DNA from: Podarcis bocagei
Lineage: Eukaryota
Assembly: GCA_964188305.1 (NCBI GenBank)
Contig: OZ076888.1
Direction: 5' to 3' (one strand)
DNA length: 64,000 bases
Part shown: one piece after another, positions 11,457 to 63,192 of the stretch
How positions within the stretch are numbered: position 1 is the stretch's first letter
Layout: each line of letters opens with the position of its first letter
Made by a program: the position numbers and the translations under genes
Notes under the pieces: model-generated
What the model saw: only the letters and a program-made list of their open reading frames with translations
Told to the model about the DNA's origin: nothing
Database searches by the model: none

Positions 11457-11590
11457 ATCTCTTGGTTCTGCCCACATGTTACCCTTTCCTCAAATCCTTC
11501 CGCTGGCTTCTCACCCCATTTTGTATTCAGCACAAATGCCCTGTCCTTTAGGAAGGCAGAAATTGCTGTCTTACTCAGTCCAGATTCATA
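11457..11590 (-). other. Putative upstream 5' exon of the same minus-strand gene
   Basis: Strong donor GAT|gtgagt at 11457; upper boundary is a guess. Confidence 0.3.
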
Positions 11591-29734: not shown

Positions 29735-29960
29735 ATGTTATGTTGGGGAAATGCCTCTTTTGGACAGCTTGGATTGGGGGGCATTGATGAAGAAGTTGTC
29801 CTAGAACCCAGAAGATGCAACTTTTTCATAAACAAAAAGGTTCGAGATGTAGGCTGTGGACTAAGACACACTGTGTTTGTCTTGGATGATGGGACTGTGT
29901 ATACATGTGGATGTAATGATTTAGGACAATTAGGACATGAAAAATCCAGGAAACGACCAG
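29735..29960 (+). CDS. HERC4: HERC4 coding exon 1 (exon starts at 29681)
   Basis: Branch point TACTAAC 29653-29659, acceptor ttacag|29681, MLCWGNASF...KSRKRP, donor AG|gtaagt. Confidence 0.96.
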
Positions 29961-41900: not shown

Positions 41901-44900
41901 ACAGTGATCCCTGGCATAGCATTAAATGCAAACTAGAAATTGTGGTTTATGTCAGTCCTAAGGTTTGTTTTTTGCTTACTGATAGTGTTTGTTGGAGTGA
42001 AAAATACGTAATGTATTTCCTCTTGCCATTAGCAGGTACAGTGGTACCTCTAGGTGTGGACTTAATCCATTTCGGGTTGCTGTTTGCACCCTGAAAAGTC
42101 CGCAACTAGAGTGCCTCTTCTGCGCATGTGCGCGGTGCAATCAAGCACATGCGCAAAGCGCGCAGATCGCTTCTGAGCATTCACAGGCAGTGAGCCCGGA
42201 AGTAAACACTTCTGGGTTTGCCACGTTCGTAAGCTGAAAGTCCGTAACAAGAGCGGAATGCAACACGAGGTATGATTGTACGAGGCAAATATACCAGAAA
42301 GGCATAATAGTAAATTATAAATAATAGTAAATTATCAACTATGCTCTACTGTGATACAGATTTATAATTTTGAGGACAAGTTATTTTTTAAATCCGAAAT
42401 TGCTCAAGTGTCCAATGAAATTTCTTAAACTGTCTTTTTGAATTCATGATAGTTAATAAGCAGGGTTTCTTGCGACTGTTTGAGAGATATCTCCTCAGGG
42501 ATAATAAACTTTGCACTTCCCTTTGTAACATCCAAAAAACTATGTCTCCTATTCTTACATATTAAAAGGATGTTGATATGGAGTGGAAAAATGGATGGTC
42601 TAATTTATTCATTGCTGAACAACTAATGAACTTGAGATCTAGACAGTATTAGTTACATATAAGTCCTGTTAAGTTGTGCAATGTTTTCATCTGCTAGATT
42701 TGCTTTTCCCTTTTATTGATAGAAAACTGGTGGTCTGCATTGGAGCCTCCATTGTTCCTTAAAATAGTGGAACTTTACAAGGATGTTGTTGTCCACCTTC
42801 TTAAAATGTACAAGATGGGCATTCCAACTTCAGAGCAAAGAATCTTCTCTAGCTGCCTGCACTCTTCTCTCAAGGTTTTGGAAATTTTGCACAGGGTAGG
42901 TCTTTGCAGTTTGTATCCTTATTTCTGCTGCCAGATACATTTTGGTTGATGTGCTGTATCATTGATGCAATTGATTTTCACTGAGTCTAGAGTTTAGAAG
43001 TCTGAACTTTCACAGTAAGTTGTGGCTGTGTGGACCATTGGGATTTGTTTGGAATCCGTATAATCATTGGATGGAGTATTTCCTCATGTTCTCATGAAGA
43101 GACATGCAAGACCATTCTTTGATTTAATGTAACATCAGAACTGAGATCAAAGTATACGGCTCTCAGTATATGGACTCACCCAAACCACAGAAGTTGAAAG
43201 TTCATGCCAATATTACAAATGGAGTCAAAATTTATTTTGTGAACAACATACCTTCCTTTAGCAAAGGCAGAACCACAAAAGAGAAATCACTAAGGCTGCA
43301 ATTCTATGCATACATGCATGCATTCTGGTTCAATGTCTTAAGATCTGACACTGCATATCGAAATAGCTGACAAGAAACATGTGGAACCCCACTTTTCAAA
43401 TAGTCTTACTCACAGGCTGCCTGGTAATAGCAAGTACTTTTATTATCAAGTTGGTTTTTGGAGTGCATCTTGGAATAAAATGCATGGTTGTTTTTACACT
43501 AACCTCTTAATGTTTACAACTTAATATATATAAACAGTATCATTCTATAAATAAATAATTTAAAACACATTTTCTCTTGCTGCTTATCAGTTATAAATAA
43601 CCTTGGTCACATTCAGCAAACAAATACCAACCCCTAAAGTGGGAGGGAGAAAGCATCATATCAAAAATGTCCTTAAAACATCAGCCTGTTCCAGCCCCTC
43701 CCCATTCTGTGGCTGAAAGCGGTGCACACAGAAAATGGCTGTTCCCTGTAGTTTATAACTAAATCATTGTGTGACTCTGACATATTCCAGTCTTGTTATG
43801 CTTTGGGAAAAGACCTATATTTATAAATGAAAATAGTTTTAAGAGTTCAGACAAATTATTCCTCTTTGTGAAGAAGGCTGGCTAACGTAGACAGCAACTT
43901 CCAGACTCCATAGTATGGTAATACCTTTATTAGGCCAGCCAAAATATTGCAAATAGCATTTCATATACAAGTCTGAAGAAATAGTTTTAATAGAATAGAG
44001 TGAAATGTAAAATATTCTCAGTGACAAACTGCATTCTCTTTAAAATGCAGGTAAATGAAAGAGGTGGGCAAATCATACAATATGATAAATTCTACATACA
44101 TGAACTACAGGATTTGATAGACATAAGAAGTGATTACTTCCACTGGATTCAGCAGCAGGCATATGGAATGGTAAATGTCCCATTTTTGTTTTCACTATGC
44201 GTTATAAAATACACTGCATGGGCTTGAATTCATATTGCATAGCTGCTCAGTTGGATGAATTGTATGGCTTAGTGTTCCCAATACAATAAATAAATTCCTG
44301 CAAACAGATAGCTAGGTGTGGGAGAGAAGGGTGTTCTGCTTAACATGCTAGATTTCTATGGATGGTATTCAACCAAAATTTCACTCAACAGTGTACCCAT
44401 TGAAATTAATGAACATGACTATGTTAGGTCCCCTGCTCCTCCACCACAGTCTGAAGCAGTGCAGGCCAAGAACAGTTTAGGTTGTGACAAGTGCTCTATT
44501 TAGAGTGGTTCTTAGTGTATGTCAGTTTTGGGTTGTGGGTTTTCTTTTTCTTTTTAGTTTTTCCTAGACAATGTCCTTTTTATGAAGTTTTCTGAAACAT
44601 TACATCCATGCAGAGTAAAAAAGTTGGTCTTTGATAAGCGTTAGAGAGAGGGCTAGTTTTTCTTCTTTTCCTTTAAAGAATACAGAGTGTACATCAAATG
44701 ATGCACTGCTTGGTTTGGATATACTGGCAAATCATGCTGTACCACAGTCACATCTTGGCACATGAGTTCTTCCTGAAGCTAACCGCCAAAATCCCTAGTC
44801 CATTCATTTGCACTGAGCCTAGACTGTTCAAAAGCAAAACCAGACTTGGTGCAGGTTTTTCTCCTGGCCTAACAAGAATTGGTGAGGCGAGCATGCAGGC

Positions 44901-47900
44901 CAGTGCTTTGCTCAGGGTTCAGGGAGATTTGTTCATGCAGCACTAAGCCATGGTATAGTGACAGACATGAATAACCTGAACTATGATTCACCACTGATCA
45001 TTGGTGATGCTGTCTGAGGCTGGTGGGAGTTGCAGTTGAGCAACAGTTTAACCACCCCTGGTTTGGTGTGAACTGGACCATAGGGTCCATAAGGTAGTAA
45101 TAGAGTTGGGCTTTTAAACAAACAAGAATATTTTTGGAAACTATTTAAGGTAGGCAACAGGAACCAAAATTCCAGGTTTATTAAATGATGGTGATCAAAC
45201 ACTAACACCTTTTTAAAATGTCATCTGCCCTCATGCATCTCTCCTCATGAGTTACTCAAATATATTACTTTTATGGGAGAATACCTGTATTCTACATCCC
45301 ACCATTGCAATTGTGCATATAATTCATTGTTCCTCTACTTCTTCTATTCAGTAATCGTGGTGTTCTCAAAGGAAAGGTCCCCACCCTTATTTAAAACTAC
45401 TCCCTAAAGTATCAGTTTTATTTTTAGCTCAGAAGTGTCTCTTTCCCTGCTCATATATCTCAAGTTGGGCATCTGAAGTATTTTTGTAATGGCTTGGAGC
45501 AGAGCCTAGAAACAGTGTAGGTTAAATAGGATCTGTGGTTTCGGAATACTGATTGTGAGAAATGCAATCTGCTTTTTAAGACTTTGAAAATGAAAAAGAT
45601 TATTCATAAATGTATTAATTGAATAGATAAGTTGTGCTCATGAGTGCTCTGTGTCCATTATCAACATGTTGATGAAGGATGAAACTAAAAAACTACCTAG
45701 GCTAGATTTTTGCGCCTGTGACATTTGGTTTTTAGGCACATTAATAGTTTAGTCATAATTTGGAGGTGGGCCACAATAAAGTTTTAGAAATGAGCTGGGA
45801 TAGATGTTTGAATAAACCAATCGTAAAGTTGGAGAATTGCACAGTTTAGGACCAAACCTCTCTGTGAACTTTTATTTATCCCTGTTTTCTAAGGCGCAAC
45901 CACTGCATCTTGTGGAAGTGAATGTGTGCCAGGCATGACTTTGGTAGAGGCTCCATGCATTTATTAGCAGTGAATCTGTATGTGGGCACAGTTATGCCAT
46001 GTACCTCCCTGAGATCCATGTGCATTAGCATACATTGTTCTCTACACTGCTCTGTGTACATAGGACATAAAGGTAAAGGGACCCCTGGCCATTAGGTCCA
46101 GTCGTGGCAGACTCTGGGGTTGCGGTGCTCATCTCGCTTTATTGGCCGAGGGAGCCGGCGTACAGCTTCCAGGTCATGTGGCCAGCATGACTAAGTCGCT
46201 TCTGGCAAACCAGAACAGCGCACGGAAATGCCATTTACCTTCCTGCCGGAGCAGTACCTATTTATCTACTTGCACTTTGATGTGCAAAGCACCATCCTAT
46301 GTACAGCGCCACCCGCGTCCCTGTACACAGGACATAGAGAGAGGTATTTAACTAAATTTTGCTCAAAATAGACCCATTGACATTCATGAAAGTGACTTAA
46401 GTTAGGGCTTGTCCACACTTAGAAAGCATGGGCCCAAGCAGTTTCCACCTTGTCCCGCTCCTTTCCCAGGGAAAACCTGCTCTTAACTTTAAATTGGAAC
46501 AAAGGGCAATCCACGGAAAAACTATTTGCTCCATTTGAGTACTAAAGAGCAGTTTTGCTTGGGGTAGGGCAGGGAAGCAGCGGGACAAGAGGAAGCTCTT
46601 AGGTTCATTAATTTCAGTAGCTCTACTCTGAATGCCACACAGGCATTAGTCTGTGCCCATCTTTTTTTAAAAAAATGCAGGCATCTGCATGAAGGCTTTT
46701 GGGGGTGTGGAGGAAAGTGGAGAGGAACCTAACAGTGTTTTTTTCCTTTTAATTACTGCTGCCTCTTATGCACTCTTTTGGTAGGATATCAGCCATGGAT
46801 TAAATGAGGTAAGAAGTTATCTGATTTCCACAGTAAAGTTTTGGAAACTAGACCCAAAGATTCTGACATCAGGTTTATCCATGGGCCTTGAATTCTGATA
46901 ATCTTGAAATAAATTCATGGATTAGATATATCTAAAACTGTTTAAAATATATAAACCTCTTCATAAGCTGGATATCCTGTATTATATCTCTCTGTCAAGT
47001 AAATGTTGCATAACTGCCAAAAGAAAATTTATATATACTGTTGCTAATACTGCACATGCTAACAGCTTTTTCTATTGCCTTTCTAGCTAGCAGATGTGCC
47101 AGTTACAATTTGCACCTACCCATTTGTGTTTGATGCACAGGCAAAGACAACACTCTTGCAGACAGATGCAGTCTTACAGATGCAGGTAAAACAGTAATTT
47201 AAAAATAAAATACTTTAAAACACTGTAGTTATTCCTGGATTGATATAACTTAGGCCCTGTTTATATTAACTGGCTTGTATCACAGTTGCTCAGTGTCTTT
47301 GGATATCAAAGATTCAGGCATTACTGCATTAGTATAATCACAAGCTGGAAATATTACTAGGAATTGTAGATTCTCTTGAGCATCCAGTGTTTATTACTAC
47401 TGCTGCTGCCACTAAGGTTTTTACTTGGTTTTTCCCAGATGGCTGTTGACCAGGCTCACAGACAGAATTTCTCATCTATTTTTCTCCCAGTATTTGAATC
47501 TGTCAATCCATGTCTGATCTTAATTGTGCGCAGAGACAATATTGTGGGGGATACCATGGAAGTCCTAAGAAAAACAAAAAACGTTGACTACAAAAAGCCT
47601 CTTAAGGTATAGCCTATATGCATGCATGTTTACCTTTTTGTGATGCACACCTGGCCTTCAGTTTTCTCTTCTTCTCCACCCCCTACCCCCTGCTTTTCCC
47701 ATGGCAAATATTTGTCCTAGAATTGGGTGAAGGGAGAATTCTGAGCAGAAAACAGCTGGCCAAGAAAAGGGTTCAGCACTCACTTCCTCCCATCATTCAA
47801 AATCACAACTACCTAAGGCTCCTTTTGGTGCATTTTCTTTCTTTTCAATTGTTGGAACTTTAGTATACACACTTGCATATAATTCATAACTTGCCCCTCA

Positions 47901-50900
47901 ACATTCATTCATAGAGTTGAGGCTGCTCCAGGTTAATGAAAAATGTACCTGTATAACCTATATACCTGTATAACATATGTCTTTACAAATATGCATTTGC
48001 CGTGTTCATATTTTATTTAATTATTTATTATTACCCCACCCATCTGGCTGGGTTTTGCCAGCCACTCTGGGTGGCTTCCAGCACATAAATAATAATAATA
48101 ATAAAACATTTATAAAAACTTAAAACACATTTTACAACTTTAAAGTACAATGTATGAAGTGGCCTTTAGTCAGACTCCTTATTGTAAATGTCATTAGCCA
48201 AGTAATAAATTGAGCACTTGTGGATAGCTCAGTTGGTCAGAGTCTGGTGCTGATAACGCCAAGGTCGCAGGTACGATTCCCTTACAGGACAGCTGCATAT
48301 TCCTGCAACGCAGGAGGTTGTTCTAGATGATACTCAGGGTCCCTTCCAACTCTACAATTCTATGATTCTATGAGTATGTGTGGTATTTTATTTTTTAAAA
48401 ATGTAATGTTCTAACTGCATTGCCAATGTTAGGTTATTTTTGTAGGGGAAGAAGCTGTTGATGCAGGAGGAGTTCGCAAAGAATTTTTCTTGCTTATCAT
48501 GAGAGAGCTGTTAGATCCCAAGTATGGAATGTTCAGGTACGATGAACAATCAAGGCTCATCTGGTTCTCAGATAAGGTATGCAATTTGTTGGGTTTTGTG
48601 TATTTATAGTGGAAATGGATATCTTGATTTACTTTCAGCCTATGGTATCTTTGAGAATATTACTACTATGATATAGTTGCACCAGTGCACACTGCATCCT
48701 TTAGACTGTGATAGCATTTGTTATGTTAGCCCTTTGCTCTTGATCCTGAATGTGCTCATTTCTGTCCCCTTTCCCTGGTGGTCACAGAAGGCCATGAATA
48801 CAACAGCACTTGATTAAGTCAGTGTGTTTTGTGGCTGCTGCATGGCTGTGTTTTTGTAGAGTCTGCTGGGGCCAAAATAAAAGTATCATTGCATCTTAAA
48901 GTCTTATGGCACAAGTTTTCATGGAGTACAGATCACTTCATTGGGTACATGAAGTGTTCACCTGAGTTGTTTGGAGGAAGGATTGTAAATCATGAGGTGA
49001 GAGGGAAATGAAATGTAGAACATATGATGTCACAATTACATTTTTAACGGTGGCCATTCACAAAACTCTTGTTGGTGACAAAAGAGACACACTACATGTG
49101 TTAAAAATGCTAGGGTAATAAAATAATCCAAATGTAGTGTGATAAAAAGCATTCCCACAGAAATATTCTACACCAGATGTGCCGCAACAAAAAATACCCT
49201 TTTCCTTTGTCATAACTGGCTTCACCAAGGTGTCTCAGAGAAAGGACTTCAAGCATGATCTTAGAACTTGAGCTGTAGGTTTCTGCAGAACAAAGCAGTC
49301 TTCCTAAGCTGATTAAAGTTCTAAAGACAAGAACCAGCACCTTAAACTGTGCCAGAGATGCAGCTAGTGCAGTTTTCTGTTGAGATATATTGCATTCAGT
49401 TGGTCTCTGTTAGTAACCTAGGCATTGTATTCCGTACTAGGGCCTCTCCTCCTTCCGGAGGGGAGGAGTTGTGAGCAGGAGGCGATTCCCGCGTCACGCA
49501 GGGGGCGTTCTGCCCACTGCCCCATTCACATGGCTGGTGCGCCACGCCCCTGGTCGAGCACCCAATCGGGGGGCTCTTGGCGGGGGCATGGTTTGCTGCT
49601 CAAATGCAGCTGCGCCAGCCATTCTGCCCATTGTGCTCACCTTTTCGCATCGAGTCTAGCTGAAGTTTCCTAGTTGCTTCAAAGGCAGCACCCAGGACTG
49701 CATTAATACAGGATGTTACCAGCAGTGGCGTAGCGTGGGGGGTGCCAGGGGGGCCGGCCGCACCGGGCGCAACATCTGGGGGGGGCGCGCTCGCTGCCTC
49801 CGGAGTCGCCGAAGAGCCTCTGGCGCAGGCTGTAGCAGAGCCCCATGTCTCGTGGAACCGACGAGCTGTGCGCGCGCCCGGGCTGAAGGCGTCCGGCAGG
49901 CAGCGGCTCTCAACGCTCGTCGCGGTCCCCGCGCATCAGGGCCGCGGAGGACGCGCCAGGCAGCCCCTACTCACAGCCCCGCCTCCGCTGCTGCTGCAGC
50001 TGCTGGGCCATGTTGCATTTTCCTCGCCTCTCTGCCCTCCTCCTCCTCTGGGCAAGCGGCGTGGTTTGGGCGGCAGCGGCAGCGGCAACTCGCCTCAGAT
50101 CACCTGACGCGGCAGGTTAGGGGTTAGGGGGGGTGCAAATTACTTGCCTTGCCCCGGGTTAGGGGGCGCAAATTACTTGCCTTGCCCCGGGTGCTGACAA
50201 CTCACGCTACGCCGCTGGTTACCAGATCATAGATAACAATCATCAGGACATCTCTCTCTAGAATGCCAACCCTCAAAACACTGGTTCCTTGCCACTTGAG
50301 TTGTTGCCTCGCTACACTAGAGGGGATTGCAAAATCAAATACAAAGCAATTAAACACCCTTTTCTGTAACCCTTGAAAAAATGGCTTGATGAGTTTTTAA
50401 CCCTATAGATCCCAACCTCAAACATATACATGAGTAATAACTGAGTGTACTAGCTTGCAAAATTATTGTGATTCCACTTGAAGTCTAGCAGCAGTTGAAT
50501 GCAAGCATGGCCTCTAAAGCAATGTGCATGTTTTTGTAAGCTTTTAAAAGTTTAATTTCAGTTTTTTCATATTTGCAGACCTTTGAAGACAGTGACTTGT
50601 TTCATCTGATTGGTGTTGTCTGTGGGCTAGCAATATATAATTTTACTATTGTAGAGCTTCACTTCCCCTTGGCTTTATATAAGAAGCTCCTGAACAAGAA
50701 GCCTTCCCTGGATGACCTCAAAGAGCTAATGCCTGATGTTGGCAGGTGAGCACATTACAACTGAAAGTACAGTAAGTAGATTAACATTTCTGTGCATCAT
50801 AACTTCTTTGACAGTGCAAAGAAATAATTCAATACCGTGGTGCCCCGCAAGACGAATGCCTCGCAAGACGGAAAACCCGCTAGACGAAAGGGTTTTCCGT

Positions 50901-51970
50901 TTTGGAGGTGCTTCGCAAAACGAATTTCCTATGGGCTTGCTTCGCAAGACAAAAATGTCTTGCAAGTTCCTGCGGGGGTTTTTTCCTCCCCCCCCCTTTT
51001 CCCAAGCCGCTAAGCCACTTATCAGCTGATCCGCTAAGCCGCTTATCAGCTGATCCGCTAAACCGCTTATCAGCTGATCCGCTAAGCCCACTAATAGCGC
51101 TAAGCCGCTAATGGGCTTGCTTCGCAAGACGAAAAAACCGCAAGACGAAGAGACTCGCGGAACGGATTCTTTTCGTCTTGCGAGGCACCACTGTACCTTG
51201 TTAAGGAGATGAGATACAAGATTTAGAGTGTCTTTATTTCTAGCTGACACACTTGAAACAAATGTAGGTTTTTTAGGATTGAAATCCTTTCAGGGCAAAA
51301 AAAACTTGAATAGATATTGACTTCTCAGTAGCTGCTAGATTTTTTGCTAATCTAAACTGTAAATTTCTGTGGAAGAATATAAAACCATTTCAGTTCTGTA
51401 AGTTTCTGAATAAATTGTGCTGTTACAACTTGTGATGAGAGACATTTTATTCTCAGGAGTATGCAGCAGTTATTGGACTACCCAGAAGATGATATAGAAG
51501 ATACCTTCTGCCTCAACTTTACAGTAAGTGTGAGATCATCCATTGCCACCTTTTTAATGCCGGTGTAATGAGTAATAATATGTAATCGAGTTTCTCTTTT
51601 CCTGTTAAAATGCTATACTTTGCATAGCATGCTTCACTTTCCTGTATTGAATTATAGATTCTATTCTGCAACAAAAAGTAAAATACACTCTCATGTTCTA
51701 AACAGATCACTGTTGAAAATTTTGGTACCACGGAAGTTAAGGAGCTAATTCCTAATGGTACTGATATTCCTGTTGTCAAACAAAATAGGTAAGTTTTAGC
51801 ATGGTAGGTTGACAGAAGTTTCCCTTTGCTTAATTTTATCAGGGAGAAATACTTTTTTCATTTCATGCAGGTTCTTAACTCAGAATTGAACTATAAGGGG
51901 TGTGGGTGTGGTGGGGAGTTATACCCAACTTCTGAGATATTTATTCCAAACCTGTAATCTTGCAAAAGAA

Positions 51971-52023
<53 letters not shown>

Positions 52024-54718
52024 GTGGTGATAAATAGGCAAAATATTTTAAGAAACGAGTTTTGCCCTCCTTCTGCTTCTCTTCTTGGTGGTTCCTTACT
52101 GCAGCCACCAAGACATTGGCAGCATTTGAATTATCTTTCCTGGCTTCATAAACCATAGCTTAGGAAGTTAGGAATTACAGTGATACCTCGGGTTAAGAAC
52201 TTAATTCGTTCTGGAGGTCCGTTCTTAACCTGAAAATGTTCTTAACCTGAGGTATCACTTTAGCTAATGGGGCCTCCCGCTGCTGCTGCACTGCTGCCAC
52301 ACAATTTCTGTTCTCATCCTGAAGCAAAGTTCTTAACCCGAGGTACTATTTCTAGGTTAGCGCAGTCTGTAACCTGAAGCGTCTGTAACCCGAAGTATCA
52401 CTGTAGTGTCAAACTTGCCTGTTCCTTTCTCATGCCTCCCCTCTTTGCTTTGTGTGCTGGATTCAGTGTGACATTCATGTTATAGTTCTTAACTAGGAGC
52501 TATCTGAAGATAATTGTTGGCAGTGCTAAAATGGTTGCTGTTCATTGCTAGTGGAGTTGTGGTTGAACATTCTCATCTTCTGAAAACATGGTGCCTTTTC
52601 TTCTCATTTGATCTTTAGGCAAGAGTTTGTGAATGCCTACGTGGACTACATCTTCAATAAATCTGTGGCTCCTCTCTATGACGCATTCCATGCAGGCTTT
52701 CACAAGGTGTGTGGAGGTAAAGTTCTGCAGCTCTTCCAGCCCAATGAACTGCAAGCAATGGTGATTGGGAATACAAACTATGATTGGAAAGAACTAGAGA
52801 AGGTATGTTACTAGTCCAGACATTAGCAGCTACTGAACACTAAAGAACCCTGTATAATTAAGCGATTGCCCAAAATAGAGCTTTTCTGTATTATGTAGAA
52901 AAACACTAAAATACATAAAATTCTATAAATACGTTTACACATAGGTATTTTTGTTTGTTCAATATACAACATTTTATTTGTAAATTTGAGGCAGGTATAT
53001 TGTGATTTTGATTTGTTGTTCTTAGAATACTCAATACAAAGGAGAATATTGGGCAGAGAATCCAACAATTAAAATGTTCTGGGAAGTTTTTCATGAGTTA
53101 CCACTGGAGAAGAAGAAACAGTTTTTATGTAAGTATACAAAACTGTGTAAGAAAATAAGAAATCTAAATAGAAACTCTAGAGCAATTGTTACCATTGGCT
53201 TATTTTTCATGTAACACTAGGTCATAATTTAGCACTATATGCTAAGCAGCAGTGAGCCTCGGGCCTGTGGAGCTTCCTTCAGCACAGCCGGCTATCGGAA
53301 GTATCTACCTATGGTTTTAAACAATCTACATCCAAACTTGGAACTGTGGTTTGTTTAGCTGTGGTGTGTTCAGACAAGCCAGGATCAATATGTAGTTTAT
53401 GATCCTGTCTTCTTATCAAGTTATAGTGTAATCTGTCCCCAAATTTGGAAGTAAGAACTCCAGTTTAAGAGCGGCAGCAGCAGTTTCTTCTAATCACTTC
53501 AGGACTGGAGGTTAGGGGAAAATGCAGGCAGCCCCCTTCATGGGAATTTTGTGGGTTGTCAACCACCCAGGGCCCCAGGGAGTTGGCACCTATGAATGTG
53601 AGTGTAAGGCTCAGTGCTGTTCATGGTTTACATGTAAGCCTAAGTGTTAGTGTTGGGTTTGGGTTTTTTGAATGGTTAAAATGCTAAGTTGACTTTGGAT
53701 TCTGTCCAAGGGAGAATTTGCATTTTCACTTTTTAAAAAAATGAATATTTTAAACAGAAATAAACAACAATTACTAGGATCAGGTCTGCAGGTTGCTTAT
53801 TCACTTATGTTTCAAATACTATCTGTTGGATCCAGACGTTTTTCGGCTGGTTTCAATGGGAATGAAGCACAACATGCATCATGATTTGGCTCACTTGATT
53901 GATTTCAGTAGGACCTAAGTTAACTTAAGTCTGGATTCTGCCCAGAGTTTTGAATGTGTGAGCACCCTAACATGCATACAGGCACATATATGAATAGATT
54001 AACTGCAGCTGTTTCTGGTGAAACACATCATACCAGTTGAAAGCACCCATGCAGCTACTCTGCTTGATTTGATGATTCATTAAAGGTTGAAAACCTTACT
54101 TTAGGTGCAAGCACACCTGTTTCCAAGCAAATAATTATTTATTTAGCCAAGAGAAACTGTTAACTTAATTAAATCACTTTACACCACACTTGTTTTTTAG
54201 GGTTGGACTCAGGAGTGTTATATGGATTTTCTGTTTTTAGTTATATTTCCCCCCCCCCCCCAAGAACCTCTGGGTGAAGCAATGAACAAATATAATAAAT
54301 AAGTTCTCTAAACTATAAAATTTGTTTAGAATAACTTTAAGCAAAAACAGTGAACTATAAACAATTTCATATGGCTATAACTGCCTTACATTTTCAGAAT
54401 TTTAGATTTGGGCTATATCAGTCTAAAAAGTAAAATGAAAATTATAGCACAGCACTAAATTTTTGGCTTTTGTACCCAGGCTTCTTACTTATTTATATTT
54501 TCTTGGTAGTATTTTTGACAGGCAGTGATCGCATTCCTATTCTTGGGATGAAGAGCCTTAGTCTTGTCATTCAGCCGACTGGAGGTGGTGATGAGTATCT
54601 CCCCGTGTCTCATACATGTTTTAATCTTCTTGATCTTCCAAAATATACAGATAAAGAAATACTCAGATCTAAGCTGATCCAGGCTATTGATCACAATGAA
54701 GGTTTCAATTTAGTATAA
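29735..54718 (+). CDS. HERC4: HERC4 E3 ubiquitin ligase (RCC1-like domain + HECT), 24 coding exons, 3183 nt, 1060 aa (1052 without the microexon)
   Basis: Exons assembled by hand with GT-AG boundaries and consistent phase; lengths 226,160,77,222,92,131,161,77,134,60,112,190,173,120,24,99,168,144,167,67,83,184,103,209. N-terminus [26 protein letters not shown] matches HERC4 as recalled. RCC1 repeats present; HECT catalytic motif [15 protein letters not shown]; ends EGFNLV*. Confidence 0.97.
31012..31171 (+). CDS. HERC4: HERC4 coding exon 2
   Basis: [24 protein letters not shown]...YTRVPR, AG/GT flanks. Confidence 0.95.
31286..31546 (+). mobile_element. Squam3-type tRNA-derived SINE, full length, (CTT)n tail
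   Basis: Pol III A-box tggtgtagtggtt, B-box-like gggtttgcgtctc, about 260 bp, simple-repeat tail. Confidence 0.85.
31548..31767. repeat. Perfect 87-bp inverted repeat with 46-bp spacer
   Basis: 31548-31634 is the exact reverse complement of 31681-31767. Confidence 0.95.
31924..32000 (+). CDS. HERC4: HERC4 coding exon 3
   Basis: [25 protein letters not shown]. Confidence 0.95.
32492..32713 (+). CDS. HERC4: HERC4 coding exon 4
   Basis: [18 protein letters not shown]...GQLGLNDEN. Confidence 0.95.
33209..33300 (+). CDS. HERC4: HERC4 coding exon 5
   Basis: [31 protein letters not shown]. Confidence 0.95.
34608..34738 (+). CDS. HERC4: HERC4 coding exon 6
   Basis: [43 protein letters not shown]. 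Confidence 0.95.
35149..35309 (+). CDS. HERC4: HERC4 coding exon 7
   Basis: [25 protein letters not shown]...DIPLNS. Confidence 0.95.
35458..36072 (+). mobile_element. 5'-truncated L1/Tx1-type LINE
   Basis: 16-bp TSD AATAAATGCTGCACCA at 35442-35457 and 36073-36088; ORF2 C-terminal remnant [15 protein letters not shown]...W...LEKL; AATAAA plus A tail. Confidence 0.85.
36350..36426 (+). CDS. HERC4: HERC4 coding exon 8
   Basis: [26 protein letters not shown]. Confidence 0.93.
37120..37259. mobile_element. Old hAT-type MITE (aactcccatcatccct family); related copies about 13320, 44980, 60298
   Basis: Internal palindrome and a ttccccatccctg terminus. Confidence 0.6.
37721..37854 (+). CDS. HERC4: HERC4 coding exon 9
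   Basis: [44 protein letters not shown], donor AA|gtaaga. Confidence 0.92.
38400..39510 (-). mobile_element. Degenerate non-LTR retrotransposon ORF2 3' region
   Basis: ORF 38671-39207 contains [17 protein letters not shown]...C...H...HC, a degraded C-terminal zinc knuckle; clade and boundaries approximate. Confidence 0.7.
39631..39690 (+). CDS. HERC4: HERC4 coding exon 10
   Basis: [19 protein letters not shown]. Confidence 0.93.
39837..39948 (+). CDS. HERC4: HERC4 coding exon 11
   Basis: [37 protein letters not shown]. Confidence 0.93.
41425..41614 (+). CDS. HERC4: HERC4 coding exon 12
   Basis: [33 protein letters not shown]...APLKVL. Confidence 0.95.
42039..42278. mobile_element. Tc1/mariner (Tigger-like) MITE
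   Basis: TA|cagtggtacctc...gaggtatgattg|TA. Confidence 0.8.
42723..42895 (+). CDS. HERC4: HERC4 coding exon 13
   Basis: [20 protein letters not shown]...LEILHR. Confidence 0.95.
44051..44170 (+). CDS. HERC4: HERC4 coding exon 14
   Basis: [40 protein letters not shown]. Confidence 0.95.
46070..46321 (-). mobile_element. Sauria SINE, internally deleted
   Basis: Both termini present; 15-bp TSD TGTACA(T/C)AGGACATA; about 100 bp shorter than the 61350 copy. Confidence 0.85.
46785..46808 (+). CDS. HERC4: HERC4 24-nt frame-preserving microexon (DISHGLNE)
   Basis: ttttggtag|GAT ATC AGC CAT GGA TTA AAT GAG|gtaaga, phase 0/0; resembles the 8-aa alternative segment recalled from human HERC4. Confidence 0.85.
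47087..47185 (+). CDS. HERC4: HERC4 coding exon 16
   Basis: [33 protein letters not shown]. Confidence 0.95.
47439..47606 (+). CDS. HERC4: HERC4 coding exon 17
   Basis: [32 protein letters not shown]...YKKPLK. Confidence 0.95.
48218..48373 (+). mobile_element. tRNA-Ile-headed SINE with CR1-type 3' tail
   Basis: tagctcagttggtcagag...gctgataacgccaaggtcgcaggt head; ggtcccttccaactct...(attctatg)n tail. Confidence 0.8.
48433..48576 (+). CDS. HERC4: HERC4 coding exon 18 (HECT)
   Basis: [48 protein letters not shown]. Confidence 0.96.
49723..50217. mobile_element. GC-rich non-autonomous hAT element
   Basis: TIR CAGTGGCGTAGC / GCTACGCCGCTG; perfect 8-bp TSD GTTACCAG. Confidence 0.9.
50579..50745 (+). 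CDS. HERC4: HERC4 coding exon 19 (HECT)
   Basis: [38 protein letters not shown]...MPDVG. Confidence 0.96.
50835..51193. mobile_element. Tc1/mariner (Tigger-like) MITE with internal 24-bp tandem repeat
   Basis: TA|ccgtggtgccccgcaagacgaa...ttcgtcttgcgaggcaccactg|TA. Confidence 0.85.
51457..51523 (+). CDS. HERC4: HERC4 coding exon 20
   Basis: [22 protein letters not shown]. Confidence 0.95.
51706..51788 (+). CDS. HERC4: HERC4 coding exon 21
   Basis: [27 protein letters not shown]. Confidence 0.95.
51972..52023. repeat. (TTTC)n microsatellite
   Basis: Read directly. Confidence 0.95.
52178..52403. mobile_element. Tc1/mariner (Tigger-like) MITE
   Basis: TA|cagtgatacctcgggtta...taacccgaagtatcactg|TA. 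Confidence 0.85.
52619..52802 (+). CDS. HERC4: HERC4 coding exon 22
   Basis: [16 protein letters not shown]...YDWKELEK. Confidence 0.95.
53026..53128 (+). CDS. HERC4: HERC4 coding exon 23
   Basis: [34 protein letters not shown]. Confidence 0.95.
54510..54718 (+). CDS. HERC4: HERC4 last coding exon (HECT catalytic Cys)
   Basis: [16 protein letters not shown]...[15 protein letters not shown]...EGFNLV then TAA. Confidence 0.96.
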
Positions 54719-55840
54719 CTTGCAGAAGCTAAGAACACAGCAACTCTTTAACGTGGGAACATTGAACTAATTTTGCATCTATCTTGCAGTGTCACATAAG
54801 GTAAAAAGCCTGGCAGCGGAGCTATTATAAGAAATGCTTGTAAACATGTTCAGTGATCGGATCCTCTAATGGCACCCAAAAATCCTTACACTAATAAACT
54901 GTCTTGATATGAATGCTGGAGCCACATTTTGCCATCTTAATAAAAATTCAACTTTGGAATAAAAGCAATGGTTTCACCAACTAAATTTTAGTACTTCACA
55001 TATTGCAAAATGACTTGCTGTGTGTGTGAAAGGTGTGCTTACTCCCCCCCCCCCATCACTGCAACAGTCACATTAGGTTTTTCATTTTGTAAATATATTT
55101 TTTTTGTAATAAAATACCTGTGCTCCAATAGCAGTAGAGTATCTATTGCTTGTAACTGAATTGGGGCTTATTTTATAAAAAGAGACACACACCCAAAAGG
55201 CGTTAACATTTGAGCTGATAAATTAAGAGATATGCATCTCTTGTCTTTTTGTAAAAATCTAACGAGGAGCCATAAATTTTATGTCAACCCTTTCATACCG
55301 GAACAAATATGGCTCCTGTTAACATAAAAAAAGTGATCAAGACAATGTGAAAGATAATTTGTCTGATAATCTCATGGCAGCATGAAGCAACTATCAGTTG
55401 TTAAAATTATGAATGGAACCCATTATTTAATCTTGGAATTCAATCCTTGGCAACTGTTGGTAATTAGAATAATCAAGGAATGCCTGGCTTCAGCTCCACT
55501 TTTTGCCTTTTACCTTCAGTAGAGCTGAGAATTTTATCCTTTTGTTCCCATTCACAAATGTTGAAAGAGCAGTTTTGCAGTTCTGGTTCAGTTTACACTT
55601 TTTCAGATAATTGTTAAATGCTCTCTTTTTAAAAGACTTTTTGGATTTCAGTAAGACATCTCTTGATGATATTGAATTAAACATGAGGATTGAGGGGGTG
55701 GGGGCTAGCTTAAGTTCCTGAATGTTTACATGTTAATGGATAGTATGTGACTTTCAGCTGTGAAATATTTATTTTTTTTTAGATTTATAAACTGCAGTGA
55801 AACAATTCAAGCATCAAATAAAAAAATTCTTGAATGAATT
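54719..55840 (+). terminator. HERC4 3' UTR with candidate poly(A) signals
   Basis: AATAAA at 54893, 55108 and 55817 among others; which site is used cannot be determined from sequence. Confidence 0.55.
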
Positions 55841-56208
55841 ATGTACAAGTGTGCATGTAGGTGTTTCATTCTTTCAACAAATTTGATTCTGTGCAGGAGT
55901 TAGCATAGCAGTGTGTCACTTAGCACACATCTCTGTGATAATTATTTTGAGGTTCATATGAGGTTCAGCCTTAACTCCCAGTTCTGTCTGGACTGCGTCT
56001 GCATAATTGACAAGACCCATGTAGGCTCTGTAGTCTGCATGACTGAAGTCCATCTGGCAATGTCACATAAGAGTGAAGCAGGGATACTGTCAATGCAATA
56101 CTGTCAATTTATATTGATACGCTGAAATGACAGGACATGGTTTAGCAAAGGATCAGATACACATGGACCAAGCTTATGCATATGTTCAGTACTTTGTATG
56201 TTATAATA

Positions 56209-56564
56209 CAGGGGTTGGCAACGTGTGGCCCATGGGCCGGATGCAGATCATGAAGACCATTTGACTGGCCCCCGAGCCACCCGCTCAGCGAGTCCCCTGC
56301 GTGCTGTGCAGGGAGTGTCCGAGCATCGCCGGAAATCACGTCTGCACACATGCAGATACTGGAAATCACTTCTGCACATGCCCAGACGCTGAAAATCGCT
56401 TCTGCGCAGGTGCGATTTTTGGCGTCTGGGCATGCGCAGAAGTGATTTCTGGTGCCACGGACACGCGCAGATGTGATTTCCAGCATTGCACTGTGCCGGT
56501 CTGGCCCACGGCAATGTCTACAGGAGTGATCCAGCCCATGGCCGGTAAGCCTTGCCAACCCCTG
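56209..56564. mobile_element. hAT MITE with long internal palindrome
   Basis: 13-bp TIR CAGGGGTTGGCAA / TTGCCAACCCCTG; TSD TTATAATA / TTATAATG. Confidence 0.9.
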
Positions 56565-57303
56565 TTATAATGGAAGTGGGGAAAGCGGTAACCCAAGTTA
56601 CTCGTTACAATGAATGGGTTCTTCCTTGCATATACCTTGTTAAGTAAGCTGTCTTTCCTTCCTACTAAGTTCCCAACATATCACTACTTCCCTTGCAGAT
56701 GTTTGTTCCATAACCATGTGTTACATTGTAATAATGCTCAGCCTAGACATCTGTTACTTTGACCAAGCGTGCCATGTGAAGCTAGGTTCTTCTACCATTC
56801 TGTTGGTTGCAGTTTGGATCATCTCCATTATTGTAGTTCACAAATAACTTGTTGAAGTAGTTCCTGTGAAAATGATGAGCTTTTTGAAGGAATCTTTTGT
56901 GTGTCAGCAGGAGTTTTAAGAATGAAGGCAGGCATGTGTGTCTGTGTCTGTGTGCACGCACACACACACACATATGCTGTTATTACACTTGAGGTGGTAG
57001 GAGATTATGAGCAATGCGGGTGCATGCATTGCTATCAAGGTCCTAATTGTACCTCATCCACCAGCATATAGGCACTTGTATGTTTCCCCTAATGGGGTAA
57101 ATAGCAGCTATAGGAGGGTGGGAGTGATTTTAAAAATAGAAAAAACAGCACAGCTGCAGCCATAATCCAAACCAGACCTACTTTGGCTGCTTTGATCCCA
57201 AAAAAGGGATACTGTTCAGAGCTCCTGTATGGTATTTCTGTCTCAGCTTTTAGATGCAGGTGCAATAAAGTAACTAAGGTTGATGCAGCTAAAGGCAGGC
57301 AGA

Positions 57304-57309
57304 TTTATT
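57304..57309 (-). terminator. Poly(A) signal of the COX5B-like gene
   Basis: Minus-strand AATAAA about 55 nt after the stop codon. Confidence 0.7.
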
Positions 57310-57362
57310 TAAGTCTACAATGAAAGAAAGAAAGAAAAAACACCTTTTCTTGGTATCAGTTC

Positions 57363-57475
57363 TCAGTGGGGGAGTTCATAATGAGTTAGCTTGTAGTAAG
57401 ACCCACACTGAGGGCAACGGTGGCTGTCTCCTTTGTGTACCCAGAACCAAATAATAGTGGAGTTATCTTCCTCAC
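57363..57475 (-). CDS. COX5B: COX5B-like exon 4
   Basis: tttctgcag|GT GAG GAA GAT AAC...CCC CAC TGA. Confidence 0.95.
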
Positions 57476-60400
57476 CTGCAGAAAGAAAGAAAAAATTCCA
57501 TTATCTGTTAATTAAGAACCCACATTTTAGAAAGCTTGAAGGACTTTAGAGAAGGACCAGTTACATTTGACAACAGTTTTGGTTCCCTAGAATAGTGGAA
57601 CAGCAGCCTTTGAAGCTGGTCTATTTTTGAAGTTGGTTATGGCATCTTTCCTACCAGATCAGTGGGAAGTAGTTTTGCATGTTGCTGCATCTTTTGTGTA
57701 GTTATCATTGTAGGACATAACTACACAGGGACTCTGGGAAAGAGACTCCCAAATGCATGAATGTGGGGGAGAATTGGCAGGAAATGTTTAACTTGTCACC
57801 CTGCTGACTGTTAGTGTCAGACAAGAAAACAAGCCCAGAGAGTGAAAACAACCTGGGAAAGAGCCAATAGCTCCTTGGTGTTTCAAAGCAAGAATCATAG
57901 AAAATGCCATGTTTGTATCTTAATATAGTATGCATCTTCTACCAAAGACTCAGGCTGTGCATATTTTACATGCCGCTTCATTTGTAACAGGGTCAATAAG
58001 TATGCCTTTACAGTATTTTTAAAATTTCTTAAAGCACTCACACCCAACTCAGCGAGAAACCACTGTTAAAAATCAACACGATTACCACAGAAATTTTGCT
58101 GTAGGTAATTTATAAGATATGGATGGAATACTTACACCCACTCTTACCCTCCTCAGCTCCCCTTGGGTTCAGTGGATTCTTCCCCTTGTGCATGCACACA
58201 GGCAGCCCAGAACAGGGAATGGGAGGCCTGAGCATGCTGCCTCTATAATTATCCCACTTTGAGTGCATGCATGCACTGATGGATGTGTTGAAGGGGAAAG
58301 GTTCTACTTGAATCAAAAGACGATTGCTTCACCATGGTGGGACGGGATTGCACCTGAAATGTCTGGTGCTTAATAGGTTTTACAAGACTATGCAATATGA
58401 GAATCAGAAAGACAGTATGTACTGAAGTCAAATGAATTCTGATACCTACAGATACAACCCACTAGTCTCTTGTCCCCAATTGATGGAACAATATGAGGCT
58501 CTTCTCTGGTTCCTGGATATTTCTTGGGCTTCAAGACGTTGTATGGATCCTTTATAAAGAAGAAATGTGTTAGTTAGCAGCACAGTTGTTCTATATCCCC
58601 TCCTGCCATGTTTTTCCTTTACTGAATGACCAAGGGTTGATTTTTAAAGAACTAGAATACAGTGGAAGAACAAAAAAGTTATAAATCTTGGGTGACTGAA
58701 GTAAGAGTTTAAGGCTGTATTCCACTCCAACCTTGGTTCATCTGCATGAATTTCATTGCTTTTAAATTCAGCTTGATGTGTAAATTAAGTGATGCTGAGA
58801 AAAATCTACAGGGCCTGTAAAGACTTGAGACCTCTAAGTCACAGTGCATGATGAGACCACAGCCAATGGTGTAGTCAACAAAAGCAATGGGAGATGTGTT
58901 GGGCTGGAGGTTAAATTTCTTTTTTAAATCTTCCACTGATAGTGATAGTTATTAGTCAAGAGTGTGAAACCAAACAAAATCATATTTCAGTGAAACTCTT
59001 CAATTGCTTTAAACTTACTTCCCCTCTCTTCAAGGCTTGCATACTTTTCAGTTCAAGCCCAGTAGCTTGCTCTTCATCCGTAGGGATACCTGAAAAGAAC
59101 AATGAAAACCCCCAGATTTGATTGCCTTTCTGACACTATGCACTGATATGCAAACTTAAACCCATTTAAATCAACTGTTAAGTGTAGGGTCAACTTGGGC
59201 TTAAGTACGCAAATCTCAGGCCTTCATAGCAAATGCAGCTAGCTCTTTCTTTTGTAATTGCCATCTCTCTTTATGCACTGATGGAGATTCTCTCTATGTG
59301 TCATTCTACATTCTGCTTTGTTGGCATTGATGATAACAACTACAGTCATACCTCTTCTTGTGAATGCTTCATGTTGCATTTTTTCAGGTTAAGAACACAG
59401 CAAACCCGGAAGTTTCGCCACACACGCAGAAGCATTCTGCACAGTTCACATATGCGCAGAAGCGCTGCTCTGGTTGCTGACTTTTCGGGGCGCGAATGGT
59501 ACCCCGGAACGGATTGTGTCCACAACCAGAGGTACCACTATACCTTTGGGCAGAGGCATAACTAGGCTCCCTTGTGTCCTTAGCAAGGAGACACATCAGT
59601 CTGCTGCCTCCCCTTTCCCTTGCGCTTTTGGCAAGGAGCTGTATTGGGAGAGACCATGGACCAGAAACTCAAAACGGTTGCTTTTCATTGGCTTTTGCAC
59701 TCAGCCAGTGACTTCCTCCACAGACATTGGGGTTGAGTCTGCTCTGCCCTGCCTCCCCACCATCTCCATTAGTCCATCTTCCTGACTTCTGCCTCTTTTC
59801 CTTCTGCCTCCATTCCACTCTTGCCCTCTCCCCTGCTGGGTGCTCTACTCACACTTCTAATAGCGCTGCCAGCCGACTGGGGAGGGGGGCCCTCAGGGCT
59901 GCAGCAATCTGATTTCTCCATCCTGGCACCCAGAGGAGCCTGCATATCTCACCCAGCCATCCAGGAGGAATGGCCTGAGGTGTACATGGATGATCAGGCT
60001 CCCAGCCACTCTGAGCCAACCTATCCAATCACTAGGCATGCCCCCGCCTCTGGGTAACTAACAGGCCATGTGTGAGGGGATTCTATATGAGCAAAATCCC
60101 TGCCATCAGTGCCTCTTCCTCTTAACAACTGCTGTAGGAAAAATTCTAGCACCAAACTGGAGTCTGCTGCTGTCATAGTTTCCAACTCTTCTTTTACACA
60201 CCTATTTGCATGCTTAGATATATCTATCCTTAACTGCTGAGCAGGTACTGGCTGAAAAAAAAGTCTTTAAAAACCCTGTAACTCACACATTAAATCAAGG
60301 ACAGCCAACTTGATGCCCTCCAGATACTTTGGACTATAATTCCCAACAGCCCCAGGCAGCATTGCCAATGATAAGGGATTATGGTAGTTGTAGTTGAAAA

Positions 60401-62504
60401 CAACTGGAAGGCACCATGTTGTCTATTCCTGTTTTACAGAATCCCCACTTTAGGGCACCTGCATTATGGTTTGACGAGGTGTACTGAGATATTAATGAAA
60501 AAGAGTGTGAAAAGAGAAATCCATGCACATTCCCACCTACTGGGTATACCACTTCTCTTGAAGGTGCCACCAAACTCAGCTGTCCTGTGTATTTCCCAGT
60601 CTTTTCTGTTTTTGCTTCAGGCAAATTGAAAATTTGTTTTAATTTCCAAAATCTGAGCTTCATGGGCCCTTTGAGGATGTAGCAATTTAATATTAAATGT
60701 TGAACCAACTAAATGAACCCCAGGAAGAAGTGGAGAATGAAACAATCCCGATAAAATTAAGCACTTCTAAATCATACTGGTTTGAAGGTGATATTTTAGG
60801 ATGCACTACATATTCTTTACCACCACCCCTGCTAAGTACACTGATCAGATGGGATATAGCAGGGTCTAATTAGGAACCTGGGGGTCATGGCAGAGAGCTC
60901 AATGAAATTATCAGTACGTTGCAGTGAATAAGACAGCTTCAGATGATAAAGAAATGAACTGAAATGAAAACTGAGAGTACCACAATGTCCTTACACAATA
61001 CATTATAGCTTAGTCGGTAGAGAACGCAATTCTTAATCTCAGGATTGTTGGTTTGAGCCTCACCTTGGGCAAAGGTTTGCTGCATTGCAGCAGGTTGGAC
61101 TACGTTGTCCCTTTGAACTCTCTAATTCTGATTCTGTGATCTATGGTGTTGCCACATTTAGAATGTTGTGTACAGCTTTAGCTGTAGCTCAAAAAGGATG
61201 TTGTAGAGATAGAAACAGTGCAGAAAAGGGAGCATATTTCCATCACTAGTTACATCAGAGAAAGTATTCCATTGAATCCCAGTTACTGGGCTATTGCCTT
61301 CAGGCTCTGTTCAGGGACATGATGTTTGCAATTTGGTAAGTGGGGTGGTGGGACACGGGTGGTGCTGTGGGTTAAACCACAGAGCGTAGGACTTGCCAAC
61401 CAGAAGGTTGAAAATTCGAATCCCTGCGACGGGGTGAGCTCTCGTTGCTCAGTCCCTGCTCCTGCCAACCTAGCAGTTCGAAAGCACGAAGTGCAAGTAG
61501 ATAAATAGGTACCGCTCCGGCGGGAAGGTAAACGCCATTTCCATGTGCTGCTCTGGTTCGCCAGAAGCGACTTAGTCATGCTGGCCACATGACCTGTCTG
61601 CGGACAAACACCGGCTCCCTCGGCCAATAAAGCGAGATGAGCGCCGCAACCCCAGAGTCGGCCACGACTGGACCTAATGGTCAGGGGTCCCTTTACCTAA
61701 GTGGGGTGGTAGGAAAGCATACTCCTAAATTACTCCATATCCCCTAGACACCAGCAGAGTTAACCAAGGAAGGGGGCTGGGTGGCAGAACTGTGGTGAGA
61801 AGGGGCCATTTCGTAACCTTTGGCTTCCACCCACAGGTCAAACGAGAGTTACAACAGAGCCTCAGCAGAAAACAAACAAACAATCCTTTTGCTTTGGGCA
61901 ATTGTAAAGTTTAGATAATAATTATTAATCATTAGCCGGCTGGTCGCCAATGGTGACTCCCTCCCCCCTCCCCCCAAATCTCACGTGCAGCTCTGCAAAC
62001 AGACTATTGCCTGCCTCACTTCAAAGGCCATTTATGGGGGGCTGTTCCACGTGTCTTCCCCACAGGGCACGTGATTCCCTTCAATAAGAGGGAAGCAAAG
62101 GGGCCTGGTGCCAGGGGCGGCTCTTGCCTGCCATACGCCCGGGGTAGGGGGGTGGGCTTTGGTTTCTTGGCGGAAAAGCAGGCAGGAGCGCCCGGGGGGA
62201 CAGGCCCTCGAGCGCCCAGCACGACCTCATAACCCCGAGGACGCGCCTCCTGGACGGGGCGGGGGGTGCCGCGCTTTGGTTTGATTTGAGGTCACCTTGC
62301 CGAGGTCTGCGAGCGCCAGGCAAAAGCAGCCCCTCGCTCCCCCAGAGCGCGCTCTCGCAAGCCCAGCAGAACGCGCTCAGCCCCGCCGCCGCCGCCCCTC
62401 GTCGGCCTGTACGCACCCCCGGCGCTCATGGCTCGGATGGAGGCGGGCGCCGTGGCCCGCACAGCTCGCGGGAAGAGCCGGAGGAGCAGCAGCCTGGTCG
62501 CCAT
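57363..62504 (-). CDS. COX5B: Cytochrome c oxidase subunit 5B-family protein (probable COX5B2-type paralogue), 4 exons, 123 aa
   Basis: Join of 62504-62417, 59089-59019, 58549-58450 and 57475-57363 (88+71+100+113 = 372 nt) gives [123 protein letters not shown]. Arg-rich mitochondrial presequence, [11 protein letters not shown] motif, four Zn-binding Cys (CxC...CxxC), perfect Kozak gccATGG. Confidence 0.95.
58450..58549 (-). CDS. COX5B: COX5B-like exon 3
   Basis: aaag|GAT CCA TAC AAC...GGT TGT ATC T|gtaggt. Confidence 0.95.
59019..59089 (-). CDS. COX5B: COX5B-like exon 2
   Basis: ttttcag|GT ATC CCT ACG GAT GAA GAG CAA GCT ACT GGG...GGG GAA|gtaagt. Confidence 0.95.
59343..59540. mobile_element. 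Tc1/mariner MITE, same family as 42039, inverted
   Basis: TA|cagtcatacctc...gaggtaccacta|TA; shared gcgcagaag core. Confidence 0.8.
61000..61146 (+). mobile_element. tRNA-Lys(CTT)-headed SINE with CR1-type tail, degenerate
   Basis: tagcttagtcggtagag...tcttaatctcagg...ggtttgagcctcaccttgggc head; attctgattctgtga tail. Confidence 0.7.
61350..61697 (+). mobile_element. Full-length Sauria SINE (Squam1)
   Basis: gggacacgggtggtgctgtgg...ggggtccctttacc; 13-bp TSD TAAGTGGGGTGGT at 61337-61349 and 61698-61710. Confidence 0.92.
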
Positions 62505-62700
62505 GGCGGAGATGCGGGGATCCGACGGCGGAGCAAGGTCAGCCAGCCTTGCAGCTGTCGCCGGCGCTCACGGGAGGCGGCCACTCCCACCAGAGGGAGG
62601 GGCAGCGGGCCACCGCCGGCAACACCAGCCCGAAGCGGGGCTGAGCGCCCCCAGGCTCAGGGCTGTGGGTCATTCATGGGCTTCCCCCCCCCCCAAGTTT
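62100..62700 (-). promoter_or_regulatory. CpG island / promoter of the COX5B-like gene
   Basis: GC/CpG-rich tract over exon 1; ERR-type half site CAAGGTCA 62534-62541; YY1-like ATGGCGG core overlapping the start codon. Confidence 0.8.
62417..62504 (-). CDS. COX5B: COX5B-like exon 1 (mitochondrial presequence)
   Basis: tccgccATGG...ATG AGC GCC GGG G|gtgcgt. Confidence 0.9.
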
Positions 62701-62751
62701 TCGCCAGCTTGGTGCTCCCCCCCATCGTGAAGAGCACAACTCCCATCATCC

Positions 62752-63192
62752 CATACCTGCCAACATTTCTCCGATGACAACAGGGACGTCCCATTTCATA
62801 ATGATAATTTTACTATTTATACCCCACACATCTTACTGGGCTGCCCCAACCTATAGCTGTCAACTTTCAGATTTGAAAATAAGGGATCAGCAGCCTCACC
62901 TGTCCCGGGGACAGTCTACGGGATATCTAACAATCCGGGGAAGCAGCGCTGGAATAAGGGAATTTCCCACAAAAAAAGGGAAGGTTGACAGCTATGCCCC
63001 AGCCGCTCTGGGCAGCTTCCAACATATATGAAAACGTAATAAAATATTAACTCCATATCCTCCAAGATTTCTCCCAATGGAAATAGGGCCGTCCTAAGGA
63101 AAAGCGGGATGTTCCCGGGATCAAAGCAGAAACCAGGACGGCTTCACTAAATCAGGGACGTCCCTGGAAAACGGGGACACTTGGAGGGTCTG
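62752..63192. mobile_element. Nested hAT-like elements with a LINE-tail fragment
   Basis: Inner element 62852-62996 (tatagctgtcaac / gttgacagctatg, TSD CCCCAACC/CCCCAGCC) splits a LINE-tail-like sequence also seen about 48010-48105; outer ends catacctgccaac...ttggagggtctg. Confidence 0.7.

Follow-up and report, generated by a model that had tools for sequence, protein, structure and literature searches.

A transcribed COX5B2 gene beside HERC4 in Podarcis bocagei, probably the tetrapod orthologue of fish and shark cox5b2

Several accessory subunits of complex IV are encoded by pairs of isoform genes, COX4I1/COX4I2, COX6A1/6A2 and COX7A1/7A2, the use of which depends on tissue or oxygen. Subunit 5B, to our knowledge, is usually treated as a single-copy subunit in tetrapods, and the human gene, COX5B at 2q11.2, adjoins ACTR1B. 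Zebrafish has two such genes: cox5b1 adjoins an ARID gene and GINS4, and cox5b2 lies between sirt1 and a DnaJ gene on one side and herc4 on the other. A survey of COX paralogues published by Little and co-workers in 2010 reportedly ascribed the extra 5B copy to teleosts. A paper on sea bream (PMC4398389), with reference to Little et al. 2010, places COX5b1 and COX5b2 among the "conserved vertebrate paralogs". Our literature search found no paper on a tetrapod COX5B2, names of the cox5b2 type occurring only in fish, plant and yeast contexts, and none that treats the lizard protein called "COX5B-like" as an orthologue of cox5b2. The subject of the present analysis is a minus-strand gene at positions 57363 to 62504 of a 64,000-nucleotide stretch of the Podarcis bocagei genome (GCA_964188305.1, contig OZ076888.1; the whole stretch is referred to as the window). 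We conclude, with a probability of about 0.9, that this gene is functional and transcribed, that it encodes a second COX5B isoform, COX5B2, and that it is orthologous, as the tetrapod member, to the cox5b2 of fish and sharks.

The gene model was rebuilt from the minus-strand letters of positions 57000-63000 and assembled by script; the window holds no runs of N. Four exons (Table 1) join into a coding sequence (CDS) of 372 nt that encodes 123 amino acids and ends in TGA, and all three introns are bordered by GT..AG with a pyrimidine tract before each AG. This is the structure that the original prediction, made from the letters alone, had put forward, and RNA junctions match it exactly. Two raw stranded RNA-seq runs carrying the same species label (X23 and X24) were available, together with older runs kept as contigs. 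Reads from X23 and X24 respectively crossed the junctions 57475|58450 (28 and 17), 58549|59019 (17 and 14) and 59089|62417 (32 and 21), so that every one of the three predicted splices is seen at the borders of the model. All junction-crossing reads were of one orientation, with the first mate on the plus strand, which in the usual stranded libraries means RNA from the minus strand. Raw-read depth within the introns was 0, except over a repeat in intron 1 that resembles a short interspersed element (SINE), and spliced contigs in two older runs had a depth of 250-675 on exons as compared with 6-12 on introns. At the 5' end an RNA contig extends to 62509 and RNA depth drops to about 0 above 62536; at the 3' end a contig of run X1 (57290-57475, depth 485) covers an unspliced 3' untranslated region (UTR) that ends near 57290. 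Reads and window disagree at two positions within exons, 59070 and 62468, and both changes are synonymous by codon reading. The CpG-island promoter and the poly(A) signal are present as originally described, with a GC content of 0.70 and an observed/expected CpG ratio of 0.74 over 62100-62800, compared with a ratio of 0.23 in the gene body.

The encoded protein belongs to the COX5B family. It matches Pfam COX5B (PF01215) with 91.7 bits against a cut-off of 31 over residues 27-117, each exon piece matches the family separately, and exon 4 by itself matches solved COX5B chains (E 4e-15); for the complete protein the E values are 1e-46 against COX5B chains in the PDB and 1.5e-46 against the bovine precursor. 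In alignments with bovine and other solved COX5B chains, C85, C87, C107 and C110 match the Zn-ligand cysteines, so the four ligands that had been predicted are all in place, and they are invariant across ten sauropsid proteins of this type, referred to as type 2 (the canonical COX5B being type 1). Residues 1-30 contain five Arg and no Asp or Glu and align with the presequence of the bovine precursor, a resemblance of composition and alignment. The segments singled out earlier as unlike mammalian COX5B, LTHYELPH among them, do differ from bovine COX5B. The one part of the original prediction that has to be given up is that the gene is hidden, as RefSeq already carries a protein annotated "COX5B, mitochondrial-like" in three Podarcis species that is 100% identical to the one encoded here.

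The chromosomal neighbourhood provides the strongest link to the fish genes. In three Podarcis assemblies SIRT1 is followed by COX5B on the same strand, about 4.5 kb downstream, and then by a convergent HERC4, and the same order is found in Lacerta and in the elephant shark, Callorhinchus; in Elgaria, Varanus and Chrysemys HERC4 is likewise convergent with a COX5B copy, SIRT1 not being seen within the 10-kb flank. The comparison of HERC4 neighbours that had been proposed as a check thus reveals a slot, SIRT1-COX5B2-HERC4, that is conserved from elephant shark to lizard. With zebrafish and other teleost cox5b2 the window gene shares the family, four exons (x/71/100/110), the sirt1-herc4 slot and its side of the main split in the tree described below; it differs in that whole-protein identity is about 59% and that zebrafish has an extra DnaJ gene and an inverted sirt1. 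Exon lengths of x/71/100/110 are common to solved COX5B genes, the last exon being 107 nt in the canonical Lacerta copy, and the 71-nt exon 2 was found in 13 of 13 vertebrate COX5B genes with a solved structure; this comparison omits one Callorhinchus copy (P0214), for which the splice finder gave no GT-AG solution. NCBI names the shark gene "cytochrome c oxidase subunit 5B2" and the lizard gene only "COX5B-like". Over about 16 kb the window is 96.8% identical to P. lilfordi, 96.5% to the Podarcis assembly GCA_964188315.1, 94.9% to P. raffonei and 91.5% to Lacerta agilis. In human, SIRT1 directly meets HERC4; this adjacency fits the loss of an intervening COX5B2, as the scar of a lost gene.

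A separate canonical COX5B exists in the same group of lizards. Canonical-type proteins are recorded in the lacertids P. muralis (P0127), Lacerta (P0078) and Zootoca (P0125), and in Elgaria, Varanus, Sceloporus and others; both types are present in Lacerta, Zootoca, P. muralis, Elgaria, Varanus, Hemicordylus, Sceloporus, Tiliqua and the turtle Carettochelys. In Lacerta the canonical gene has four exons and is convergent with an adjoining gene for a 376-aa actin-family protein, an arrangement that corresponds to human COX5B beside ACTR1B. The two types agree in the Pfam COX5B domain, the four Zn cysteines, length and intron positions, and in a putative presequence. They differ in their neighbourhoods (SIRT1/HERC4 as opposed to an ACTR1B-like gene), in a mature-part identity of 71-78% within species, and in the C-terminal motif, where the type 2 protein has His and the canonical copies mostly Pro. 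Clean diagnostic residues separating the types were looked for, and only weak ones emerged, the best marker being this position, His118. A processed retrocopy or pseudogene was considered as an identity for the window gene and is ruled out by its three GT-AG introns at ancestral positions, its intact open reading frame (ORF) and its CpG-island promoter, as the original prediction had held on the strength of the introns.

One retrocopy of the canonical gene does occur within Podarcis. The P. lilfordi protein labelled "COX5B" (P0131, 132 aa) is the product of an intronless processed copy at L008:9980-10560, near MED30. This copy has an intact ORF, keeps both UTRs of its parent gene (5' and 3') together with a poly(A) tail, and shows a target-site duplication of about 19 bp; its synonymous and non-synonymous divergences (dS and dN) from Lacerta canonical COX5B are 0.077 and 0.017. 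Both it and the window gene encode a COX5B ORF, but the retrocopy is intronless and derived from the canonical gene, whereas the window gene has three ancestral introns and a CpG-island promoter of its own.

A tree of 78 vertebrate COX5B proteins (IQ-TREE, 129 columns, rooted on lamprey without an invertebrate outgroup) contains a starred split (97/98) that delimits a canonical clade of 44 rows. Within it are mammals, birds, crocodilians, the canonical turtle, squamate, frog and caecilian copies, salamanders and coelacanth, one copy each from Callorhinchus, Polypterus and Amia, the sturgeon and paddlefish copies and teleost 5B1. This canonical clade does not include the window gene, which falls with the squamate copies annotated "like" (support 100/99) and is not grouped with mammalian COX5B; also outside the canonical clade are the "like" copies of turtles and amphibians, the 5B2 of shark and chimaera and that of teleosts. 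The tree is consistent with the COX5B2 assignment and is not decisive, because the protein is short and the root is lamprey rather than an invertebrate. The canonical-side copy of Callorhinchus milii (P0214, L009) has a long branch (0.49); instead of the ACTR1B or ARID surroundings found elsewhere, it has an intermediate-filament gene and an LGI-like gene next to it.

Several points weigh against COX5B2 as we interpret it. In the lamprey-rooted tree, which has no invertebrate outgroup, the type 2 copies form a grade and not a clade, and a topology in which squamate type 2 joins the canonical clade of amniotes is 14.9 log-likelihood units worse and is not rejected by the approximately unbiased (AU) test (p=0.2). 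The canonical copy was located in close relatives and not in the assembly to which the window belongs. Few residues distinguish the types, and these carry no evident functional difference in sequence; the copy of Xenopus tropicalis is not adjacent to HERC4 and has been relocated. Membership of the product in complex IV is a prediction from sequence. As the AU test on sequence is weak at p=0.2, it is synteny that carries the orthology of COX5B2.

One other explanation for the data is that the window gene is a duplicate of canonical COX5B made at the DNA level within squamates or sauropsids, which came to lie beside HERC4 by chance. The unrejected topology and the small number of diagnostic sites would both suit such an origin; however, a duplication specific to squamates is rejected by the AU test (p=0.023), the free tree places the window gene outside the starred canonical clade, and the occupied slot in elephant shark and in zebrafish (with its one extra gene) would need independent insertions at a single site. 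In addition, identity between type 1 and type 2 is 71-78% within each species, in every lineage from shark to lizard. We therefore regard a lineage-specific duplication as very unlikely.

The gene might alternatively be transcribed and yet be functionally redundant or in decay, its product playing no part in complex IV. Selection was examined by pairwise Nei-Gojobori estimates of the ratio dN/dS from nine of the solved CDSs. Between the window and Elgaria, Varanus and Chrysemys the ratio was 0.20-0.36 for the whole CDS and 0.13-0.24 for the mature part, the lowest mature-part value, 0.09, being that of Varanus against Chrysemys; the four Podarcis CDSs differ at no more than one site, which is synonymous. 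Among squamates the identity of the mature domain is 82-96% for type 2 and 77-91% for type 1. COX5B2 is under purifying selection, as the proposed dN/dS check found (0.09-0.36), and is as conserved as the canonical copy among squamates; together these two results indicate a working gene. A whole-CDS ratio near 0.3 is not extremely low and leaves a decaying gene some room, but the mature-part values (0.09-0.24), conservation equal to that of the canonical copy, robust and correctly spliced expression, retention from a time before cartilaginous and bony vertebrates diverged, and the intact ORF, Zn ligands and exon structure in seven lizard families and more than ten turtles all oppose it, and we consider decay as improbable as a lineage-specific duplication. 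That the window gene is instead the sole orthologue of mammalian COX5B, moved beside HERC4 in lizards, has only membership of the COX5B family in its favour and is scarcely credible, being refuted by the separate canonical copy in P. muralis, Lacerta and Zootoca (four exons, beside an ACTR1B-like gene, in Lacerta), the second locus that the original prediction had called for, and by the position of the window gene outside the canonical clade.

Distribution was determined with a profile of the ten sauropsid type 2 proteins and a look-up of cluster members. COX5B2 is present in seven lizard families (Lacertidae, Anguidae, Varanidae, Cordylidae, Teiidae, Phrynosomatidae and Scincidae) and in more than ten turtle species. 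It was not seen in snakes, geckos, Anolis, birds, crocodilians or mammals among annotated proteins within the best 120 matches, an absence that is a lead and not proof. Both COX5B types occur in chimaera, Polypterus, Amia, teleosts, caecilians, frogs, turtles and squamates. Since the SIRT1-HERC4 slot is shared with shark and zebrafish and both types are found from chimaera to squamates, the duplication that separated COX5B from COX5B2 is older than jawed vertebrates, that is, older than the split of their cartilaginous and bony lineages. Of the earlier idea of an old paralogue resembling cox5b2, kept in lizards and lost in mammals, age and retention are upheld by synteny and the tree, and the mammalian loss is suggested by an absence from annotation.

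We propose that COX5B2 and canonical COX5B arose by a duplication before cartilaginous and bony vertebrates diverged, most likely as part of one of the early vertebrate genome duplications. Human 2q11 and 10q21-24 hold several gene pairs, including ACTR1B/ACTR1A and ARID5A/ARID5B, and an origin by early genome duplication would fit these. COX5B2 would then have remained in its ancestral slot between SIRT1 and HERC4. Mammals and birds, and probably also certain other sauropsids, would have lost it from that interval. The putative Arg-rich presequence is presumably removed after import to leave a mature protein of about 93 amino acids, which may replace canonical 5B at the matrix-side position of complex IV and so create an alternative form of the enzyme. 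Family membership, the Zn site, the putative presequence and evolutionary constraint suggest such a substitution. The isoform switching in reptiles that the original prediction envisaged would be a further extrapolation.

The coordinates of the gene and of its surroundings are collected in Table 1. HERC4 was identified in the window by Pfam RCC1 and HECT matches on exon ORFs and by collinear Podarcis gene calls; it is convergent with COX5B2, with stop codons about 2.6 kb apart, and SIRT1 would be expected just past the end of the window.

Table 1. Features of the COX5B2 locus and its neighbour in the window
Feature	Position	Strand	Remarks
COX5B2 exon 1, coding part	62417..62504	-	88 nt; ATG at 62504; putative presequence; ends in phase 1
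COX5B2 intron 1	59090..62416	-	3327 nt; GT..AG; holds SINE-like element at about 61248-61799
COX5B2 exon 2	59019..59089	-	71 nt; mature protein begins here
COX5B2 exon 3	58450..58549	-	100 nt; last base falls within a Cys codon of the C-I-C motif
COX5B2 exon 4, coding part	57363..57475	-	110 nt plus TGA at 57365-57363; end of zinc ribbon, C-P-Q-C motif
COX5B2 3' UTR	57290..57362	-	AATAAA at 57309-57304; transcript contig ends at about 57290
Possible alternative 3' UTR intron	54635..57343	-	GT..AG; donor 19 nt past the stop
CpG-island promoter region	62100..62800	.	Around the COX5B2 start
HERC4	29705..54718	+	RCC1 repeats at about 29.7-35 kb; HECT exons at about 48-54.7 kb; TAA at 54716-54718

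The possible alternative intron in the 3' UTR comes from 27 letters of one X4 contig (depth 167), which are unique at 54608-54634 and are joined to 57344; its acceptor leads into the antisense strand of the final coding exon of HERC4. This contig may represent an alternative 3' end of COX5B2 that overlaps HERC4 in antisense. In Chrysemys picta (L004) the HERC4 call, 4303-26401, spans the COX5B-like gene on the opposite strand at 10001-16401, which suggests an annotated HERC4 isoform with a terminal exon far downstream and a sense-antisense overlap of the two genes. The SINE-like repeat in intron 1 is covered to great depth by RNA and contigs, on both strands and with numerous loose ends, and is a transcribed, high-copy family outside the COX5B2 mRNA. 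At 57321, in the (GAAA)n run of the 3' UTR, RNA reads hold an additional GAAA (4/4 and 6/6), a polymorphism in repeat length that sets the sequenced animals apart from the assembly.

The two 5B genes resemble the COX4I, COX6A and COX7A pairs as an ancient pair of vertebrate paralogues for a nuclear-encoded accessory subunit with both members under constraint, and differ from them in that the second 5B copy was not seen in mammals. We know of no tetrapod in which the members of the 5B pair have been shown to differ in expression or in kinetics. A proteome study of crucian carp (PMC10007964) reports that a protein which its authors label COX5B2 rises 7.7-fold in the liver under anoxia, which is no more than a lead. 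One further possibility, which we consider unlikely as matters stand, is that COX5B2 is a complex IV isoform of ectotherms, tuned by oxygen or temperature, which was kept from the early vertebrate genome duplications onwards in fish, amphibians, turtles and most lizards and lost independently in the two endothermic lineages, mammals and birds. If this were true, lizards and turtles would remodel subunit 5B in hypoxia, cold or brumation, and the alternative 3' UTR antisense to the last exon of HERC4 could be a further layer.

As RefSeq already annotates the protein as "COX5B-like", what is gained here is a name and an evolutionary placement rather than a discovery. The COX5B2 data would revise the teleost-only origin that the second 5B copy is said to have, making the copy much older than teleosts. 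A second 5B gene is expressed and constrained in lizards, turtles and amphibians, in a slot that has been conserved from shark to lizard, and reptile physiology thereby gains a concrete second 5B isoform for work on temperature, hypoxia and brumation.

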